64,000 nt of DNA from Klebsormidium nitens (GCA_000708835.1 DF237143.1:62001-126000); one strand, 5' to 3'; counted from the stretch's first letter, positions 190 to 9,132 are shown. A program made the numbers and translations. Notes: generated from the letters alone by a model not told the origin.

Positions 190-3100
190 ATGAAGCTCTG
201 CAGTGCGCCGGCCCTGCTGCAGGCCCTGGTGTTCGCTGCTCTTTGCTGGGTAAGTTGGACGCTTGCTGTGCCACGCTCCATATGGCGGGTCTTTCCATGA
301 CCACTGGACAGTGGTAGAGAACCTGACTTCAAGCGTAACTGCCAAGCTGACCCGTTGTTGCGTCCTCAGCCTTCTGATTTGATATGCTGGAGAAAGATAG
401 CTTATTCTTTTGTTCTCTTATTCAGATGTTGTGTCTGGTAAGAAGCATACACGGAAGTCTGGTTCGCAGGCATAGTACTGTAGTAGGGTTGGTTTGGACA
501 GCCCACCATTCACCGTCCTTGGGACATCTGTGCCAGTGTTGTCCAAGCTGGGTTTGCGCACTCATGTAACTAAAACGAGCTCTCTTTTATGGTCAACATG
601 TTCAGGGATTTGGCCTTGCACAAGAGGCGGGTTGCCGCAAATAGCCGATGCGCAAGTAGGGCGTGTCTCACAAGAGAATCTTTCTATCCTGTAGCCCACA
701 ATTCCTAGCCCTGTTTGAAAGCCACTGTAATGCGGCAGTTGGATAGCAGCAGCGTGTTGAGATCAAATTGTGGGTAAACTGATCAATATACCCCTCGCAC
801 TCATCACAAGCTTCTCGAGCAGCTCTTCTATTCACAAGAATTCCAACAAACGTTCGCCGCCCATCTCCAAACTCAGCAACCTGCATCGGGGCAAGAAGAA
901 ACGTTCAGACCGACACAGAACAAGACTATCATGGATCTCACCTGGATTTGCATCCGGTGACCTGGAACTGCTTTGATTTTGCAGACGGCTGCCGCAGGCC
1001 CCCGGGGTATTTCGGAGCCAAATACTGTCGTCGGTCCCGGGAGCAGCGACTTGCCCGTCGCAAGGCTGCGGCCTTTTGCTGCTCTGACTGGGCCTCCGAC
1101 TCCAAAGGGTATCACATACCAGTGAGCCTTTCAATTTTGTCCCCTTCTGAGACGAGTTTGGGGTTTAACTCAGCAAGGTAGAGAGTCCACCCATTTGCGG
1201 ACATTGTCTTTGTAAACAGGCAGCACGTGTTAACTTCAAGAACATCCTAAACTTCGGTTTAAAAATTAGTCCAGCGTCTTCCATCGTATTGAATTGAGGT
1301 ATAGTGCAATTCGGCCAGGGAGTATTGAGGCGAAGCTGCAGTTTGGCGTAAAGGGTGTTCCGGTGTGCAGTAGTGAACCGGCAGGTAACCCGCCTCTGAA
1401 TCAGACCCGCTGTTAACAGCTGTCGGCTGCTTCCTGACCAAGTGTCACGTGTCCCTTCTGCAGTGGTGGTCCTATTCTGAGCAAACCACTTACTGTCTAT
1501 TTCATCTGGTATGGGGCGGCGTTCACTGCAGCCCAGAAAAATATCTTCAAGGGGCTCGTCAGTTCTTTCTCGCCGAGCTCGAACACAGGCAACACTGGTG
1601 AGTCGAGCCGATCCATCCGGACTGGCACACTTGAAACCAGAATGGAGGTTGAAAACTGCAATTTCAAGCTTTGCATCAGAATTCAGAACACTTCGCAGTT
1701 TCCTACGTTCCGTATCAGGGGCGAACGAGAGCTCGATCGCGTTTGCGTGCTGCCGCAGAATGACTACTGACGGATCACATAGGCGCCCTCAAAGAAGACC
1801 ATCCGGTTTCTGACACTCCAAACAGCACGCAACCAGCGTGCGGTTGATCCCCGTAGGCGTAAACGTAAAGAAGACGATACAAGCAGCTATTTACGTCGCT
1901 GGTTCCTTTCCTGCAGCTCAATTGTGGTGGGCGAGCGTCAATGCTTACTACGACGGCAACCAGAACCACGTCTCCCCGACTGTGGCTCTGGGAGCCGATT
2001 ACGAAGACTCTCCGGGGTCTCAGGTATCGCCTGCCGCCTTTGGCCTCGTATGAAGAGTTTCCGTTTGATCTCTGTTGTCGGGAACGACCGGAAGAAAGAT
2101 GAGCTTAGACAAAGAAGCTTTCTAAGCTTTTCGGAGGTCGAAGCTTCTCGTCAGAGCTTCCCTCTTCATGTGCTTGCTGAGTAAGCCCCGATCTGGCCTC
2201 GTCATTACGAGATATTGTCCTTTGCTTCTGGTTGCTCAAATCCGACGAACTAGAGTTGTCCGCATCCAACGGAAGCAATCCATTGGGAGGTCAAGGAACC
2301 CTGACGTCAGCCCGTGTGTTGCAGAACTCGAGCCTGGTCATCACTCCGACCAGCAACGCGATGTTCGATGTCGTCACCCACGCGATCACCGCGGGAGGGC
2401 TCCCAGTTGATCCCAATGGAGTGTACATGGTCATGGGGAATCAAGGCACCTCGGTGGTGCGTATTCACACCAGCCATCCGCAGAGTAGAGTCCCCTGGAA
2501 GATTGAGACCTTTCTTGCGCTGCACAATTGATGGAAGCAGGTGCATGTAGAAGGAGGCTGCGCAATACTTTCAGGGGCCAAAAGAAGAGTGGTTTTGCTT
2601 TTGTCATCTGGTTCAAATTTGATATCCCTCACGAACGATCGCGATTAAGCTGGTTAAAGCAGAACCAAGGGGCTTGGATGCCAGAGAGTCAGTGGTGGCT
2701 GGCAATCCTCCTTCCCCATAGGACTGTCTCAATGTATCAAGCAAATAGCCTTGACGGTTGCGCTGTAATCGTTCCCTCCGGATGCGAACGAACACTCTTG
2801 TAGCCGAAAACCCCAAACAACCGTGACTCACTTTCAGAAGCGGACACGACCAACCTCGCCTGCGGTTAAATTCACCGTCTTGTAATAGGGAGGCTGCTGA
2901 AAATTCCTGTCAAGCTGAGCCAATTCGCTCAACCTAAGCTTCCGCTTGTTTCCAAACAACTCCAGGTAGGCTACGGAACCTGTGGGACGGAGTCAGAGTG
3001 CTCCAGCAACTCTTACGGAGTGACATTCTGCGGGTGGCATTCTTTTGAGAAATATAACGGGCAGACCCTTCACTACGGCTTTGTGGGCGTCGGCGCTCCG

Positions 3101-6100
3101 GCTTGCCGGCCGCGGGGGAATATGAACGGGTAGGACTATCTCTTTGTTTCTGTCTTGTTTGTTCCGGCTGACTTCAGCCGCTGACGGCAGCGGCGTCACT
3201 CTCGTGACGGTGGCGATTTGCGAACGGCAACTGAGGAGAGTGTCTGGACCGTCCGTTTATAGTTTGTGCCTGGTCGTTGGTTTGAATGAGATATAAGTCA
3301 GGTCCAGCGGCGTGGTTCACAGGAAACGAGGGACTCTAAATCGTAACGGAAGCTTCGTTTCGTTTTTCAACGGGAATATCGGCGGAAGTATCTCAGTTTA
3401 TGCTGCGCTTTGATGGCCTCTTGTCTTCAGTGTTTTGAGATATTAACAACTAGAGTTGGCAACGGTAGGAAACGCTGGACCCAGGGCGGCACTCCGTGGA
3501 AGCTGCAACAAGAGAGGGTGAAGAGATGGGAAGGAAAAGACTATCTAGGATAATGGACAAGCTTATATCAAGCACGAAGCAGAAGAGACTCGATGAAAGG
3601 GTCAACAGCCAAAAAGAGCAGCCACAACACAAGGGCCACAGTACGTGGAGTCAAACTGGTCGAAAGGAAAAGGAGAGGAAGAAGGCAAACGGAAAAGATA
3701 AGACAGTAAGGGAATCATCATGGTGATTACGACGAGCACCGTGTTTCCAAGGAATGTTTCGAACTCAGAATCAATAAGCTTCAGTAGTAGTCAGCTCCCA
3801 GCTATCACCACTGGAAACTGAGACCCGATTTCCACCTGCTTAATAATATTGCCACTCTTAACCCTCGCTAACCCCAGCCGTCCCAGGGTGGCTAACTAGT
3901 CCTGCAAACTGTAACCAACTTCTGTTGCCAGGTCTCCCAACGGCGATCCTCCCATCGACGCGGCCGCCAACATTTTCGCCCACGAGTTGGCAGAGTCCGC
4001 CACCGACCCGCAATACGACGCCTGGTGGGACGACGCTACTCAGCGCGAGGCGGCGGACCGGTGCAACTTCCTGTTCGGTGAGGGCGTCACAGCAGTATCA
4101 AGTTTGCGACTGCACTGCGGAGACAGCAAACATCGAACTCCTCTGACCCGCTCTTTAGATTCTTTTGCAACGCGTGACGCTCAATTCAAGTAGCGCCATC
4201 TAAACCACGTTCCTTTCCTCCAGGCACCACGACGCCATCTGCCAGTGGGGGCGGCAAGTAAGTTGATACTCCTTCGTCCAACGTGCTGAATATGAAACCT
4301 TCTGACTCCGGCGTCTTCGAGCATACGAGTAGCAGATTCAAACGCCAATCCCGTTTGACGTCTCCTCATATTTGTTAATACCGTTGACTGGAAACTCCCT
4401 GCGCGACTTGTCAAAATTGAAGGCTGGATAGAAGTTTCGCCGAAAATATACTTCCTGATTGGTAGGGTATTCAAAATTTCATCAAATTCGGGGTTACGGA
4501 AAAGTGCTTTCTGTTGGATTGTGCAGTTACAATCTGGTAGGGAACGGCGGCAAGCAGTACCTCATACAGCAGTTTTGGGACTTCACTGCCGGTGCCTGCG
4601 TCACAACTTCGGCGTCCAACGGTAGGCAGACTTTGCTGTGCGCGGCCGGAAATAGTATCCACCGGCGGACTCATCTTCGAAGTCTACGAAGTCAGGGTCT
4701 GTATCTGGCCGAGTGCGAGAGCAGCCGTTCGTTTCCAAACCAAGAGACGGCCTAAATGAAACTCAACACTGGACGGGACAAGAAGGCGCCTTCTAAGTGG
4801 CCGATCGGATGCTACAGCAACGGACTGCACGTTGTGTGACGTATCGAACTTCTGCAATTTAGTGAGATAAAACCAAGGACACTTTGGCTCTGCCTTTCGC
4901 TGCCACATTCCCTTCTCTTTCCACCATAAACTCGTCGTCTATTCGCTCCGCACTCACACGCCGCGAAGCTACAGACTCAGCCCGCAGCCGTCCTGCTGAC
5001 GTCGCCTCACGCTGACGCCACTTCCCGCTGACGTCACGCAGTCGGCGGCACGGTGGGCGGGGACCCCCACTTCGCGGCGGGTTACCTTAACTACACGACG
5101 GAGAGCGGGGAACCGGAGGCCGCGGCGATCGACTTCGACTTCCAGGGCCTGCCGGACCGCACCTTCTGCATCTCGTCCGACCTGCACATCGCGGTGAGCC
5201 CACGTCAGCGGCTGACGTCAGCATGACGCCAATCGTTCCTGGTATGGAAAGGCCGCACTCGCCTTGTGGACCGTTTGCAGAAACTCAGCCGTTTCAACGC
5301 CCGGGATGAACCATGATTTGAGGAAGAACACTGGCGCATTTTTGGTACATGGATCTTTTGCCTCTGCATCTCGAGCTGAGAGTCTTCCTCCTGCCCGACG
5401 CGTCGCAAGCAATGAGCAAGCGCCGTGAGCATAAGCAACGGCAGGCTGGCGAACTCGCGTTCTTGGTAGCAAGCAACTCGCAGGCGACTCGCGTGAGCAT
5501 GCATAACGCCAAGCTCTATACCCTGTCATGAGCGCCTCTAAACCTTGTCCTGAACCCCTCTAAACCCTGTCCTAAACCCCTTACAAACCCCGCGCCGCAG
5601 TTGAACGCGCGCTTCGTGGGCGGGGCGCCCGACGAGCGCGGCGTCGCGGGCACGTGGATGGACGCAATCGCCATAGTCTGGGCGTCCGAAACGGGCGTCC
5701 GCCGGACGCTGACGGTGTCCATCGACCAGTCCAAGGACTTTTTGGACGGGGACTGCTACGAGATCGAGTATGATGGGAAGAGTGTGCAGCTGTCGCCGGT
5801 AAGCCCAAGGGAGCTTCCTGGCTTGCGGAGTAGAAAGGGTCCGATCGAATTAGTAGCCACAAGCATGGGCTTTTGAGCCCATCTGCGGCCAGTGCTTTTG
5901 CAGTTTCAACCTTAGCTTCTGTTGCATCCATTCGGTCAGTCACTTTGTTTTACAGCTTCATTTGCTTTCGCTTAGCTATCGTCCCGACTGGCAGAGCCGA
6001 CTGGCTACTCCGCACGAACCTGTGACCTCTCAGGCTGCCAGGATGAACACTGATTCGCACAGATTTTCAAGACTCAGAAGCGGAAATCTCAGTGAGAAAG

Positions 6101-7509
6101 CTGCTGCAAGTTTGGGCGCAAAGAAGAACGCTTCGACCAATTGCAGTCGAACGAGACGGACGTGCGATGGACGAGCCCCGACGGGCAGCTCCACCTGGCG
6201 CGGCCCCCCGGCCACGTGGGCCTTCCCACGTGGGGCAACATCTCAATCATTGTCGACGGCAATCTGAACCTCGAATTGACTACAGAGGAGGAGAAGCGGA
6301 TCAACCTGGAGCCGCTCGGGAAGTTCATCAACATGGAGGTCAAGGGGCTGACTGCGACGCGCCACGTGCACGGGGTGAGTTACCGGGCAGGGGGTCGTTT
6401 CGTTCTCGCGTTTCGATATTAGGAAACTGACTCGGTTACGAAATTGACTCCATTAGGAAACTGACTCGATGAGCAGACAAGAAGGACAAAGTAACCAAGA
6501 AAGTTGCGCTGCTGAGGTCTTGTTAGCAGAGTCTCAGAAGACGGGCACTCCTCTTCTGGGACCTCGTAATAAAATCCTCAGCTTGAGCGATTGCTGATCG
6601 ATCTACCCCCTCCGCATTCTATCAGCAGCTAGGTTCCTCAAACTTCCCCGGGTGCCGGTTGACTAATGGAGCAAAAGGCAGTCGGCATTCCATCTTCCCC
6701 TCGCTTGCCCTCATTGAGCCCCTCCGTGCACGTCCCCGGTGCTTCTTCTACTGACCGCCGTTGCTTGCTGTTCTCTGTGGGTTACTGGACCAAGGTTTTG
6801 CCCAGCGGCGGTTGAACATGGCTGGCTGCGGACACCAGATACTCGCGATTCCCTGAACGGACCCTAAATGTCTGAACTGAAAAACCTTCTGTAGGTGCTG
6901 GGCCAGATGTTTGCCCCGGGCGGGGTCCAGCGGCGGCTGGGCATGGCTGTCTCGGACGAGAACAACCGGGAGTTTGTCGATGGTATTGTCGAGGATTATA
7001 TCACGCCCAGCCTGACGGACCCGGACTGCTACTACAGCGAGTTTCTGGTAAGGAATGGACAGCGGTTCTTTCAACCGAGACGCGCCATCCTCTTTTTCAA
7101 ATCTTTGTTGGTTCCAGCTGACTCTGACAAGACCTCTAACCCCAGAGAAGGTTAACACACTGAAAAGGTTTTGTACGACTGTGGACTACAAGTATAGCGC
7201 TCGCCTCCTGAAAACAATGGCGAGAGATTTCGGGCCCCCTGAAAACAGTGTTGGAAGTTCTCGGAAGCCGATTGTATTTTCTTCAAGAACCGTATGTCCC
7301 AGTATCAAAAACGTTGTGGCGTCACGAAGACCCGAGTTGACCCTGATGTGAATTGCTTCCAGGAATACGCGCGCGAGGAGCACAATAAGAACCCGTCCAG
7401 ACGAAAGCTGTTGTCTCTAGCGCACGGGGAGCGGATTCACACCGCCCGCTTGAGTTACACGCACCGGTCGAACGGGGGAGCTAGGACGCGACGAGTACTG
7501 TGGCGGTAG
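190..7509 (+). CDS. Secreted Phi-1/EXORDIUM-like protein fused to a C-terminal Root_cap/LEA-related (vWD-like) region; 14 exons, about 628 aa
   Basis: Phase-consistent exons 190-249, 985-1121, 1464-1597, 1917-2023, 2325-~2456, 2966-3129, 3932-4077, 4224-4257, 4527-4621, 5042-5193, 5601-5798, 6147-6374, 6895-7047, 7363-7509. N-terminus MKLCSAPALLQALVFAALCW looks like a signal peptide. Phi-1 motifs: ITYHGGPIL..VYFIWYG, WWASVNAYY, LPVDPNGVY, FCGWHS, SPNGDPPIDAAANIFAHELAESATDP, YNLVGNGGKQYLIQQFWD. Root_cap-type motifs: GGDPHF..FDFQG..FCISSDLHIALNARFVG..TWMDAIAI, VHGVLGQMF, PDC. Confidence 0.85.
5536..5579. repeat. Two 22-bp tandem units with telomere-like CTAAACCC cores, inside an intron just upstream of the 5600 acceptor
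   Basis: CTCTAAACCTTGTCCTGAACCC (5536-5557) and CTCTAAACCCTGTCCTAAACCC (5558-5579), 20/22 identical. Confidence 0.75.
6419..6469. repeat. Intronic 17-bp minisatellite, 3 copies
   Basis: TTAGGAAACTGACTCGG / TTACGAAATTGACTCCA / TTAGGAAACTGACTCGA. Confidence 0.8.
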
Positions 7510-9132
7510 CCATAGCGTATGGAATCTGTGACGTCAGTCAAGGTCTTCGAACCCACAGGCGGAGCTTCGCTTGTGGGTAATTGTATATTCGTGATATCAG
7601 CTTAGGACAAAGATGGATATTGAAAGTTCGCAAATGCAAGTTGCGTTTACTGCGGCGCTGCTACAGTGTGCGACTCCTTGCTTGACAGACTATAGTTTCG
7701 AGTATTTATACGTTTCAAGACGAACAGGACTCAGCATGTGTAAGGAAGGAAGCAATTCTGGAATACGGTAGTAACCAACAGCTATTTGAGTTACGCTTCA
7801 AGTTCTTGGTACAGACACTAAAGACCTGCAGATATGAACCCATGGGGTCGAAGCTGCATGTGTTTCACAATTCAATGCTTAAGCTAGGGTCATTGCCGGT
7901 TTTTTGTTGGGCAAGCAGGTGCAAAGCTCCCAAGTCGAGGAGCTCAATACGTCAAAGAAGAAAACGAAGAAAACATATGGTTTCCGATTGAAATTGTTGC
8001 TCAAGGCAGTCAACTTCGAACACGCGCATTAGCTCACTCCGCTGTACGAGTTCAAGGATCATTTGGATCGTTGGATGAATCGATTGTGTTGTTCATGCCG
8101 ATCAAGCAGGTTTCTGCCATTGCCCTAGCTGCACCACACGAACGTTCCGTATCATACGTTGACGTACCACTGTCTTGCGTAAGTTGCGCGCGCATGTCCA
8201 AACTGAATGATGCCACGATGCACACGCACACCCGTGCATTGGGGTCGGACGCGCGCTTTGCATATGCGTGCTGATGATCCAAACTGAGGCCGGAATAAAC
8301 TCCAGTGAACACAACTGCTTATCCATGCAGTACATGTAAAGCTAGGCTCGGGGCCCTTGACCGATATCGCACCCGACATGTTTCTTTCGACGGATCGTGT
8401 TCGATATACTTCCCACAAAGGCGTGAAGCATGGTTTACCGTTGATTTCCGTGATACTCGCACCTAATTAATCGCAGACTGGCCGCGTGCAACATCTTGGG
8501 TGCGAAGTGACAAGATGCCGGAGAAGTTCTATGCATTCGACTCGGACCACATGTTATGTGCGTTTACCGGCCATATGTCGGAAGCATAAAGCTATCATAC
8601 CGGCCATGTGAAGCACAGAAAACACAAATCTCTTTTTATTGCTTGCCAAGTGCAGATTTTAATATGGAGAGAGAGAAAAACTTTTGCTTTACACTGATGA
8701 GAATCACTACATAAGCCTAACTCTTGACCACGTCTATGTTGCCAGAAATCTGCTTTAGGAGTCCATTTTTTGGGAGTATCATTCAACACCCCGCTCAATG
8801 TTATAAGGTATAACGCATGCTGGGGCTCAACAAAAGCAAAGCGCCACGTAGGTTGCCTCATTTGCCTGCTCTAATAGGACCGCAAAGCCTAAACCGCAAG
8901 CGGTGCTGGCCGTATGGATCTTCACGTTCCCAAATCCTCTACAAGCTTGACATTATGGCAAAAAATGGTCACCTTTCGTCTACAGGAACATAAGAGAATA
9001 CAAGAAAAGCGAACAAATGTCGATTGCTGCTCCACTAGTACCACCCCTCCCACCAACGACAGCTCAAAGCAAGCTACCGCTAGAATTCCCATCCGCCGTC
9101 CCCAAGAAGCCTCCAATTGCGGCGACACCTCA

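Follow-up and report, generated by a model that had tools for sequence, protein, structure and literature searches.

A predicted gene of Klebsormidium nitens joining an EXORDIUM (Phi_1) domain to a root-cap DPH domain with a GDPH motif

Introduction

Two widespread families of secreted plant proteins, the EXORDIUM proteins and the root-cap proteins, the latter with about 2000 streptophyte members, have no biochemical mechanism in the literature searched. EXO, an apoplastic protein, is required for cells to expand; its PHI1 region was said in 2013 to resemble no known domain (PMC3691544). Root-cap proteins are built from a signal peptide, then about 100 N-terminal residues with no known function, then a beta-sandwich and a root-cap sub-domain, and the protein AnIBP has been called "the only known exception", a root-cap protein with a functional N-terminal domain (10.1101/2024.01.29.577848). 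The study of AnIBP defined the DPH domain as the roughly 280 residues at the C terminus, with DPH at their start and the root-cap sub-domain at their end (Prochazkova et al. 2024, PMC10796529). Here we describe KFL_001940120, a gene at positions 190-7509 of a 64-kb stretch of DNA from the alga Klebsormidium nitens (DF237143.1:62001-126000, hereafter the window), in which a Phi_1 (EXORDIUM) module and a root-cap module are almost certainly encoded as a single fused gene, as judged from the sequence of three genomes. KFL_001940120 would be a second exception to the root-cap plan, with a different passenger.

The DPH domain of this protein opens with the motif GDPH, which is also known from von Willebrand D (VWD) domains. 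In these, the Asp-Pro bond of the motif sits in the beta1-beta2 turn and self-cleaves at mildly acidic or neutral pH; cleavage requires both the Asp and the His, and fragments are possible if no disulfide holds beta1 (PMC10880436). In the literature searched, nothing was found that links root-cap proteins to GDPH or to von Willebrand domains.

Results

The gene was built by hand from the window by joining exons with canonical GT-AG borders and translating them to check the reading frames. This gave 14 exons on the plus strand, with 1887 nt translating to 628 codons and a TAG at 7507-7509, and the resulting protein is identical, letter for letter over 628 residues, to NCBI KFL_001940120 of K. 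nitens. The public record lists it as "hypothetical protein KFL_001940120" (GCA_000708835.1, DF237143.1:62190-69509), the official annotation carries the identical 14-exon model, and UniProt has the protein as uncharacterised, with Pfam Phi_1 only. The order of parts in the protein is a predicted signal peptide, a short low-complexity stretch, Phi_1 at residues 63-331, an 11-residue linker and the DPH/root-cap domain, which runs to residue 628. The features of the gene are as follows.

190-7509, plus strand: whole coding region of KFL_001940120, 14 exons, 628 codons and TAG
190-249, plus strand: exon 1, start codon and most of the predicted signal peptide
985-1121, plus strand: exon 2, end of the predicted signal peptide, low-complexity N-terminal stretch, start of Phi_1
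1464-1597, plus strand: exon 3, Phi_1, Pfam profile positions 6-43 of 276 (E 7e-6)
1917-2023, plus strand: exon 4, Phi_1
2325-2456, plus strand: exon 5, Phi_1
2966-3129, plus strand: exon 6, Phi_1, with the invariant CGWH (residues 212-215) at 3029-3040
3932-4077, plus strand: exon 7, Phi_1 profile positions 179-227, with the invariant HELAE (HExxE, residues 262-266) at 3981-3995
4224-4257, plus strand: exon 8, Phi_1, 34 nt, a size kept in both orthologous loci
4527-4621, plus strand: exon 9, last Phi_1 exon, profile positions 250-275 of 276, ending in phase 1 with no stop
4622-5041, plus strand: intron 9, 420 nt, GT..AG, at the join of both modules, with no usable ATG
5042-5193, plus strand: exon 10, first exon of the DPH domain, with G343, D344, P345 and H346 at 5059-5070
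5601-5798, plus strand: exon 11, putative DPH beta-sandwich
6147-6374, plus strand: exon 12, putative DPH beta-sandwich; the sub-threshold Pfam Root_cap match begins at 6354
6895-7047, plus strand: exon 13, root-cap sub-domain with GVLGQMF; the Pfam Root_cap match ends at 7044
7363-7509, plus strand: exon 14, basic C-terminal tail and TAG

The predicted signal peptide comprises residues 1-24 and ends at 996 in exon 2. Its n-h-c pattern, MKLCSAPALLQALVFAALCWTAAA|G (AAA|G), comes from inspection by eye; both orthologous loci described below conserve it.

The two modules meet at intron 9. Exon 9 runs to 4621 and leaves the frame in phase 1 (..TCCAACG|gtaggc), and the acceptor at 5041/5042 (cacgcag|TCGGCGG) restores the frame as ...SASN-V-G-G-T-V-G-G-D-P-H-F. 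Reading on past exon 9 meets a TAA at 4753-4755, and the frame of exon 10 is closed by a stop four codons upstream. A search of intron 9 for ATG codons returned two only, with open reading frames (ORFs) of 27 and 17 codons, neither of which resembles a signal peptide. An earlier note on this DNA had proposed one secreted protein from the same donor, acceptor, restored frame, TAA at 4755 and TAG at 7509, all of which are exact in the window sequence; its statement that the root-cap part lacks a separate ATG and signal peptide agrees with the closed exon-10 frame and with the unsuitable ORFs of intron 9. An alternative first exon inside intron 9 was also considered and was ruled out by the ATG and ORF content of the intron and by the closed frame of exon 10.

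Orthologous loci were reached with exon 12 in two unannotated genomic sources, the Logan accession SRR23617307 (L001) and the JGI metagenome 3300060285 (L002). Both retain synteny with the downstream neighbour gene, which makes them positional orthologues of KFL_001940120. Each has collinear counterparts of all 14 exons, keeps all 13 intron positions and phases, and has an intact reading frame (630 residues in L001, 619 in L002), at overall identities to KFL_001940120 of about 85% and 58%, respectively (80-91% and 42-61% by region). Where the modules join, a phase-1 GT donor and a phase-1 AG acceptor are present in all three genomes, with no stop ending exon 9, and each genome also has an in-frame stop just 5' of exon 10 without an ATG. 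Both modules are under purifying selection, with ratios of nonsynonymous to synonymous divergence (dN/dS) of 0.12-0.36. The comparison strongly supports the single-gene proposal of the earlier note, since both orthologues keep the phase-1 join and the intact frame, and the official annotation is the same.

The opposing explanation is that two adjacent genes or transcripts were wrongly joined, namely a Phi_1 gene ending at the TAA at 4755 and a separate root-cap gene. A hint in this direction comes from three GCTGACG repeats (4995, 5011 and 5027), 16 nt apart and just 5' of the exon-10 acceptor, whose TGACG cores resemble bZIP promoter sites. Two of the repeats are kept in L001, and the repeats match the CTRAY branch-point consensus as well as bZIP sites, with CTRAY motifs 46, 30 and 14 nt before the acceptor. 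For the modules to be separate genes, the interval between them would have to supply a stop codon, a promoter, a start codon and a signal peptide; none of these is present, and the two-gene reading is rejected. The phase-1 donor and acceptor are retained in three genomes down to 58% identity, and the tails read through from exon 9 are 44, 22 and 8 residues long across these genomes and are therefore not conserved. Intron 9 is likewise ordinary in length and divergence: its 420 nt compare with 146-802 nt for the other introns of the gene, and its 49.7% identity between the window and L001 with 17-57% for the other introns. The neighbouring genes, both on the minus strand, are much further away (the upstream one ends about 2.3 kb before the ATG and the downstream one starts about 1.6 kb after the stop), which makes the true intergenic gaps here 4-5 times longer than intron 9. 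With these observations a wrongly joined pair of genes becomes very improbable. A functional intron-retention isoform was ruled out separately, as the read-through tails are unconserved.

Some further observations concern the gene at the DNA level. The palindromic sequence TGACGTCA occurs 12 times in the window, compared to about one expected occurrence, and four copies lie in or next to KFL_001940120; the TGACGTCA/GCTGACG sites at this gene are at 4995-5036, 5211-5220, 2302-2309 and 7529-7536. Synonymous divergence (dS) is much lower in the DPH half (5042-7509) than in the Phi_1 half (985-4621) in two orthologue comparisons (0.32 compared to 0.59, and 0.87 compared to 2.56), and the GC content at third codon positions is higher (0.86 compared to 0.72), which together suggest a stronger codon bias or another DNA-level constraint in the DPH half. 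Downstream of the coding region, the first approximately 100 nt after the stop (7519-7633), which include a TGACGTCA copy, are conserved with L001, unlike the introns (about 75% in a translated comparison), and are probably a conserved element of the 3' untranslated region.

The Phi_1 module is complete, as the earlier note had said. The Pfam Phi_1 model (PF04674) matches residues 63-331 with 105.9 bits against a cut-off of 25, spanning profile positions 1-275 of 276. The motifs conserved in the family (CGWH, HELxE, SPNGD and others) are present in KFL_001940120, and ten residues (C212, H215, C237, D254, H262, E263, E266, E284, D287 and C289) are invariant in 34 aligned sequences that include KFL_001940120; of these residues, H215, D254, H262, E263, E266, E284 and D287 are invariant across plant, algal, fungal and bacterial homologues. 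Amongst the six cysteines of Phi_1 are the invariant C212, C237 and C289 and the nearly invariant C329. With this 34-sequence alignment, AlphaFold modelled residues 60-336 at values above 90 of its predicted local distance difference test (pLDDT).

In comparisons with solved structures, the top matches of the Phi_1 model were nearly all catalytic domains of metzincins and other zincins, with Z-scores of 7-8.4 over 150-175 aligned residues. These included ADAM22 (Z 8.4), ADAM8 (Z 8.1) and TACE (Z 8.0), followed by ADAMTS1, ADAMTS5, archaemetzincin, snake-venom metalloproteases, fragilysin and ulilysin, and the top Foldseek matches were ADAMTS-1 and fragilysin at E-values of about 0.08. In the model, H262-E263-x-x-E266 lies on a long helix formed by residues 251-269. 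Interpolating roughly and linearly between the aligned ranges would place this HExxE close to the helix that carries HExxH in ADAM8 and TACE. As modelled, the Phi_1 module looks zincin-like in fold, with an invariant HExxE motif, and it may bind metal or act as a hydrolase.

Phi_1 domains are also frequent in long secreted proteins of bacteria (Acidobacteria and others), where they occur beside TIG, ricin, CAP, FG-GAP/VCBS and other domains, and one was seen in the chytrid Batrachochytrium salamandrivorans. At 33-37% identity, these bacterial and chytrid domains are as close to the domain of KFL_001940120 as the Closterium proteins are.

The C-terminal half (residues 343-628) opens with GDPH, and its 285 residues from D344 to R628, taken as sequence, fit the published definition of the DPH domain. 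A DPH profile was built from K. nitens proteins named "Root cap family" together with exons 10-13 of KFL_001940120 and its orthologues, and residues 329-579 score 377 bits against it. Exons 10-13 are collinear with the root-cap proteins of K. nitens through GDPHF, NARFVG, IDQxKxF, W(T/A)SPDG, PLGK(F/Y) and HGVLGQMF, at about 34-53% identity to the stand-alone proteins (about 36% over the DPH domain). In the protein atlas, KFL_001940120 and its paralogue P0006 both have a Root_cap cluster as a neighbour, with a template modelling (TM) score of 0.73 and feature scores of 0.92-0.95. The label "Root_cap" that the earlier note had given to this half is thus carried by the DPH profile, the K. nitens proteins and the atlas neighbours, and only in part by the Pfam score, which is under threshold; its additional label "LEA-type" reflects annotation habit only. 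The short, Cys-paired N-terminal region of root-cap proteins (about 100 residues) is replaced here by a Phi_1 domain of 270 residues.

Elsewhere in K. nitens, stand-alone root-cap genes form a tandem cluster (KFL_004310070/080/110/120). In addition, KFL_002290180, named "expansin-like EG45 domain-containing", shares the Cys-rich N-terminus of root-cap proteins and the first part of the DPH domain, and the DPH module therefore appears to occur with several different partners in K. nitens.

The fold of the DPH domain was searched with an AlphaFold model of P0006, made with a 16-row alignment, and not with KFL_001940120 itself, whose model has a DPH half without alignment support that is unreliable; mixed alignments of Phi_1 and DPH homologues placed DPH sequences on the Phi_1 half and were not used for folding. 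When the P0006 model was compared to 48,161 solved chains with VIA-align, ranks 1-19 were all VWD or VWD-derived domains with Z-scores of 6.0-9.9, led by MUC5B (Z 9.9, 117 residues aligned), VWF (8.3), MUC2 D1 (7.7) and FCGBP D10 (7.5) and including RGMB (6.4), vitellogenin, Cypridina luciferase and an insect pigment protein. Below rank 19 there were one unrelated chain at Z 5.9 and a remainder at 4.6 or less. Foldseek gave as its top 13 matches members of the same VWD-type families, with MUC2, VWF, MUC5AC and RGMB first and a probability of 0.97-1.0 for nine of the ten best. A VWD cluster was also a protein-atlas neighbour of KFL_001940120 and P0006 (0.85-0.86), as were ITI_HC_C clusters (feature scores 0.90-0.92, TM 0.52-0.60). 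From these model comparisons, the DPH domain is quite likely to be a VWD-like beta-sandwich.

The position of the motif could be compared directly. In P0006, whose GDPH occupies residues 115-118, the aligned core begins five residues past the His, at 123; in FCGBP D10, where the motif is G4079-D4080-P4081-H4082, it begins three residues past the His, at 4085. The two core starts agree within two residues, and therefore GDPH in the model is at the canonical VWD position. This in-register placement, together with the VWD-like model, strengthens the proposal of the earlier note that GDPH could be a self-cleavage site. The sequence GDPHF is invariant in the three orthologues and in four or more K. 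nitens paralogues, and the linker preceding it varies. KFL_001940120 has no Cys next to GDPH, unlike the paralogues, which have C-G-D-P-H.

The rarity of this architecture was assessed in several searches. A whole-protein search among candidates of 345-1099 residues, a range that leaves the land-plant EXO proteins (about 310 residues) outside it, returned 41 matches, none of which, apart from KFL_001940120 itself, covers more than 54% of the query. None of the other Phi_1 proteins matched the DPH profile, and a metagenome scan with KFL_001940120 found only six Phi_1 loci, all of bacterial type and without introns, and turned up no additional fusion. A phmmer search with exon 12 of a library of representatives at 50% identity returned genomic fragments and one paralogue only; it missed KFL_001940120, which contains exon 12 exactly, and a blank from that library is accordingly not evidence of absence. 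The gene identifier KFL_001940120 had no match in the literature searched. To date the fusion is known from Klebsormidium and two related genomes only. The sequence and gene model are already public and the Phi_1 plus DPH architecture is undescribed; the suspicion of the earlier note that it is unusual is supported by the protein, DPH-profile and metagenome searches, in which no second protein or locus had both modules.

Discussion

The reading towards which we lean, by a narrow balance of probability, is that KFL_001940120 encodes a secreted fusion that cuts itself between D344 and P345. The protein would keep to the root-cap plan, in which a signal peptide and a variable N-terminal passenger precede the DPH domain; its passenger is a whole EXORDIUM domain. 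The cut would take place in the acidic secretory pathway or in the cell wall, and would yield an EXORDIUM module of about 34 kDa ending in Asp 344 and a DPH module of about 31 kDa. Once freed, the modules could part, as cysteine counting shows no obvious disulfide between the two. The structure of the gene, its two domains, their conservation, the rarity of the fusion and the similarity in fold are shown here, and from them we infer the secretion, the cleavage and any enzymatic or wall role of KFL_001940120; the earlier note had put forward a possible part in the wall, in mucilage or in adhesion. Self-cleavage at D344|P345, taken by itself and argued by analogy with VWD domains, is plausible at somewhat less than an even chance.

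Several observations weigh against this reading. The mean pLDDT of the P0006 model is 41, with values of 60-80 only at residues 167-253, and the Foldseek E-values for the VWD-type matches are just 0.02-0.09. Pfam VWD (PF00094) has no match to KFL_001940120 at E-values up to 1, and the DPH profile had 0 matches among the sequences of solved structures at E-values up to 10. For the Phi_1 module, the zincin Z-scores are middling, though consistent as to family, and the motif is HExxE and not the canonical HExxH. The Pfam Root_cap model (PF06830, 57 residues) matches residues 523-579 with 14.9 bits (E 0.03), under its cut-off of 27; the K. nitens proteins named "Root cap family" in UniProt likewise reach just 15-19 bits, and an exon-wise Pfam scan of exons 10-13 gave no Root_cap match because the model straddles the join of exons 12 and 13. 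The public KFL_001940120 model is itself a prediction, and the fusion is read here from genomic DNA. Finally, AnIBP, the only DPH fusion studied, ran at about 55 kDa, its uncleaved size, in a gel spot that was not identified by mass spectrometry (PMC10796529).

In line with the AnIBP result, the fusion could be real and stay uncleaved, with a DPH beta-sandwich that binds the wall, adheres or oligomerises and in this way anchors or multimerises EXORDIUM in the cell wall. For AnIBP, a protein of DUF3494 and DPH, the authors proposed oligomerisation through the beta-sandwich. Additionally, many VWD domains are never cleaved, and land-plant root-cap proteins mostly have DPR, not DPH, yet the domain persists in them (10.1101/2024.01.29.577848). 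An uncleaved protein does not account as readily for GDPHF, which is invariant in the orthologues and in the K. nitens paralogues while its flanks vary, or for the location of GDPH at the VWD cleavage position. The apoplast and the late secretory pathway are, moreover, acidic, which would favour cleavage of the Asp-Pro bond (PMC10880436), and the AnIBP spot that speaks for the uncleaved form is the one that mass spectrometry never identified. We regard an uncleaved anchor or multimer as possible, with odds clearly short of even.

The atlas neighbours bring in a further possibility, in which the DPH domain acts like the C-terminal pro-domain of the inter-alpha-inhibitor (ITI) heavy chains. In those proteins the cleavage site is DPHFII, a sequence not confirmed in the literature searched, and it resembles the DPHF of KFL_001940120. 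The cut at Asp-Pro would then be coupled to transfer of the C-terminal Asp onto a hydroxyl of a wall polysaccharide. The ITI heavy-chain pro-domains are likewise C-terminal, have 239-244 residues and are removed as the C terminus of the chain is esterified to chondroitin sulfate (PMC7170535), ITI_HC_C clusters are among the protein-atlas neighbours of the DPH domain, and two paralogues, P0009 and P0010, have weak Pfam ITI_HC_C matches (E 0.05-0.14). Every one of these links is weak or below threshold, KFL_001940120 itself has no Pfam ITI_HC_C (PF06668) match, no polysaccharide is known to serve as acceptor, and nothing comparable was found in plants. On this balance, such a coupled transfer is unlikely, and so, to the same degree, is the broader proposal that the root-cap DPH domain might be the green-lineage counterpart of both the animal self-cleaving VWD domain and the ITI pro-domain, and might cut at GD|PH and tie its passenger, in Klebsormidium a zincin-like EXORDIUM module, covalently to wall polysaccharide.

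If self-cleavage at D344|P345, as in the reading we prefer, does occur, the presence of DPH in algae and of DPR in land plants would mark a functional shift in land-plant evolution; if the attachment to the wall is true, it would be the first mechanism for both the root-cap family and the EXORDIUM proteins. A conserved natural fusion in an early-diverging land alga indicates that both modules can work in one polypeptide, and it extends the plan of a passenger plus DPH domain beyond the single known ice-binding case. KFL_001940120 additionally offers a natural test case for two hypotheses, that DPH is a self-cleaving module of the VWD type with GDPH and that Phi_1 is a zincin-like domain with HExxE.

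Comparison with known systems

The closest described system is AnIBP from Ancylonema nordenskioeldii (PMC10796529). Like KFL_001940120, whose secretion is predicted, it is a secreted protein of a streptophyte alga in which a folded, known domain replaces the short N-terminal region; the C-terminal domain that follows, about 280 residues long, opens with DPH and closes with the root-cap sub-domain. It differs in its passenger, which is a DUF3494 ice-binding beta-solenoid whereas here it is Phi_1, and in coming from a different algal class, the Zygnematophyceae. Its authors drew no link between the DPH domain and VWD or self-cleavage.

Within K. nitens, the proteins KFL_004310070, _080 and _110 and their relatives share with KFL_001940120 a homologous DPH domain, collinear from GDPHF to GVLGQMF and beyond, and they have a signal peptide, as is predicted for KFL_001940120. 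The stand-alone root-cap proteins of this species differ in having a Cys-rich N-terminal part of about 110 residues, with a Cys two residues before GDPH.

On the EXORDIUM side, KFL_001940120 resembles the land-plant EXORDIUM/EXL/PHI-1 proteins (PF04674) in carrying a complete Phi_1 domain behind a secretion signal, here a predicted one. The land-plant EXO and EXL proteins are described as single-domain proteins of about 300 residues, in contrast to KFL_001940120, which has 628 residues and an extra C-terminal domain of 285 residues. Among matches of at least 345 residues, its nearest Phi_1 relatives come from Closterium and from bacteria and are about 33-37% identical.

With the GDPH-bearing VWD domains (FCGBP, MUC2, MUC5AC, RGM and BMPER), the DPH domain would share a beta-sandwich, as modelled, with GDPH just before the aligned core. 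Unlike the animal VWD proteins, KFL_001940120 has no Pfam VWD match, no C8/TIL partners and no evident beta1 disulfide, and it belongs to a different kingdom. The ITI_HC_C pro-domain (PF06668), of about 240 residues, is comparable as a C-terminal domain that follows a passenger, from which it is removed on maturation in the ITI chains, and as a feature and structure neighbour in the atlas; the similarity to it is weak or below threshold, and glycan ester transfer of its kind is unsupported in plants.

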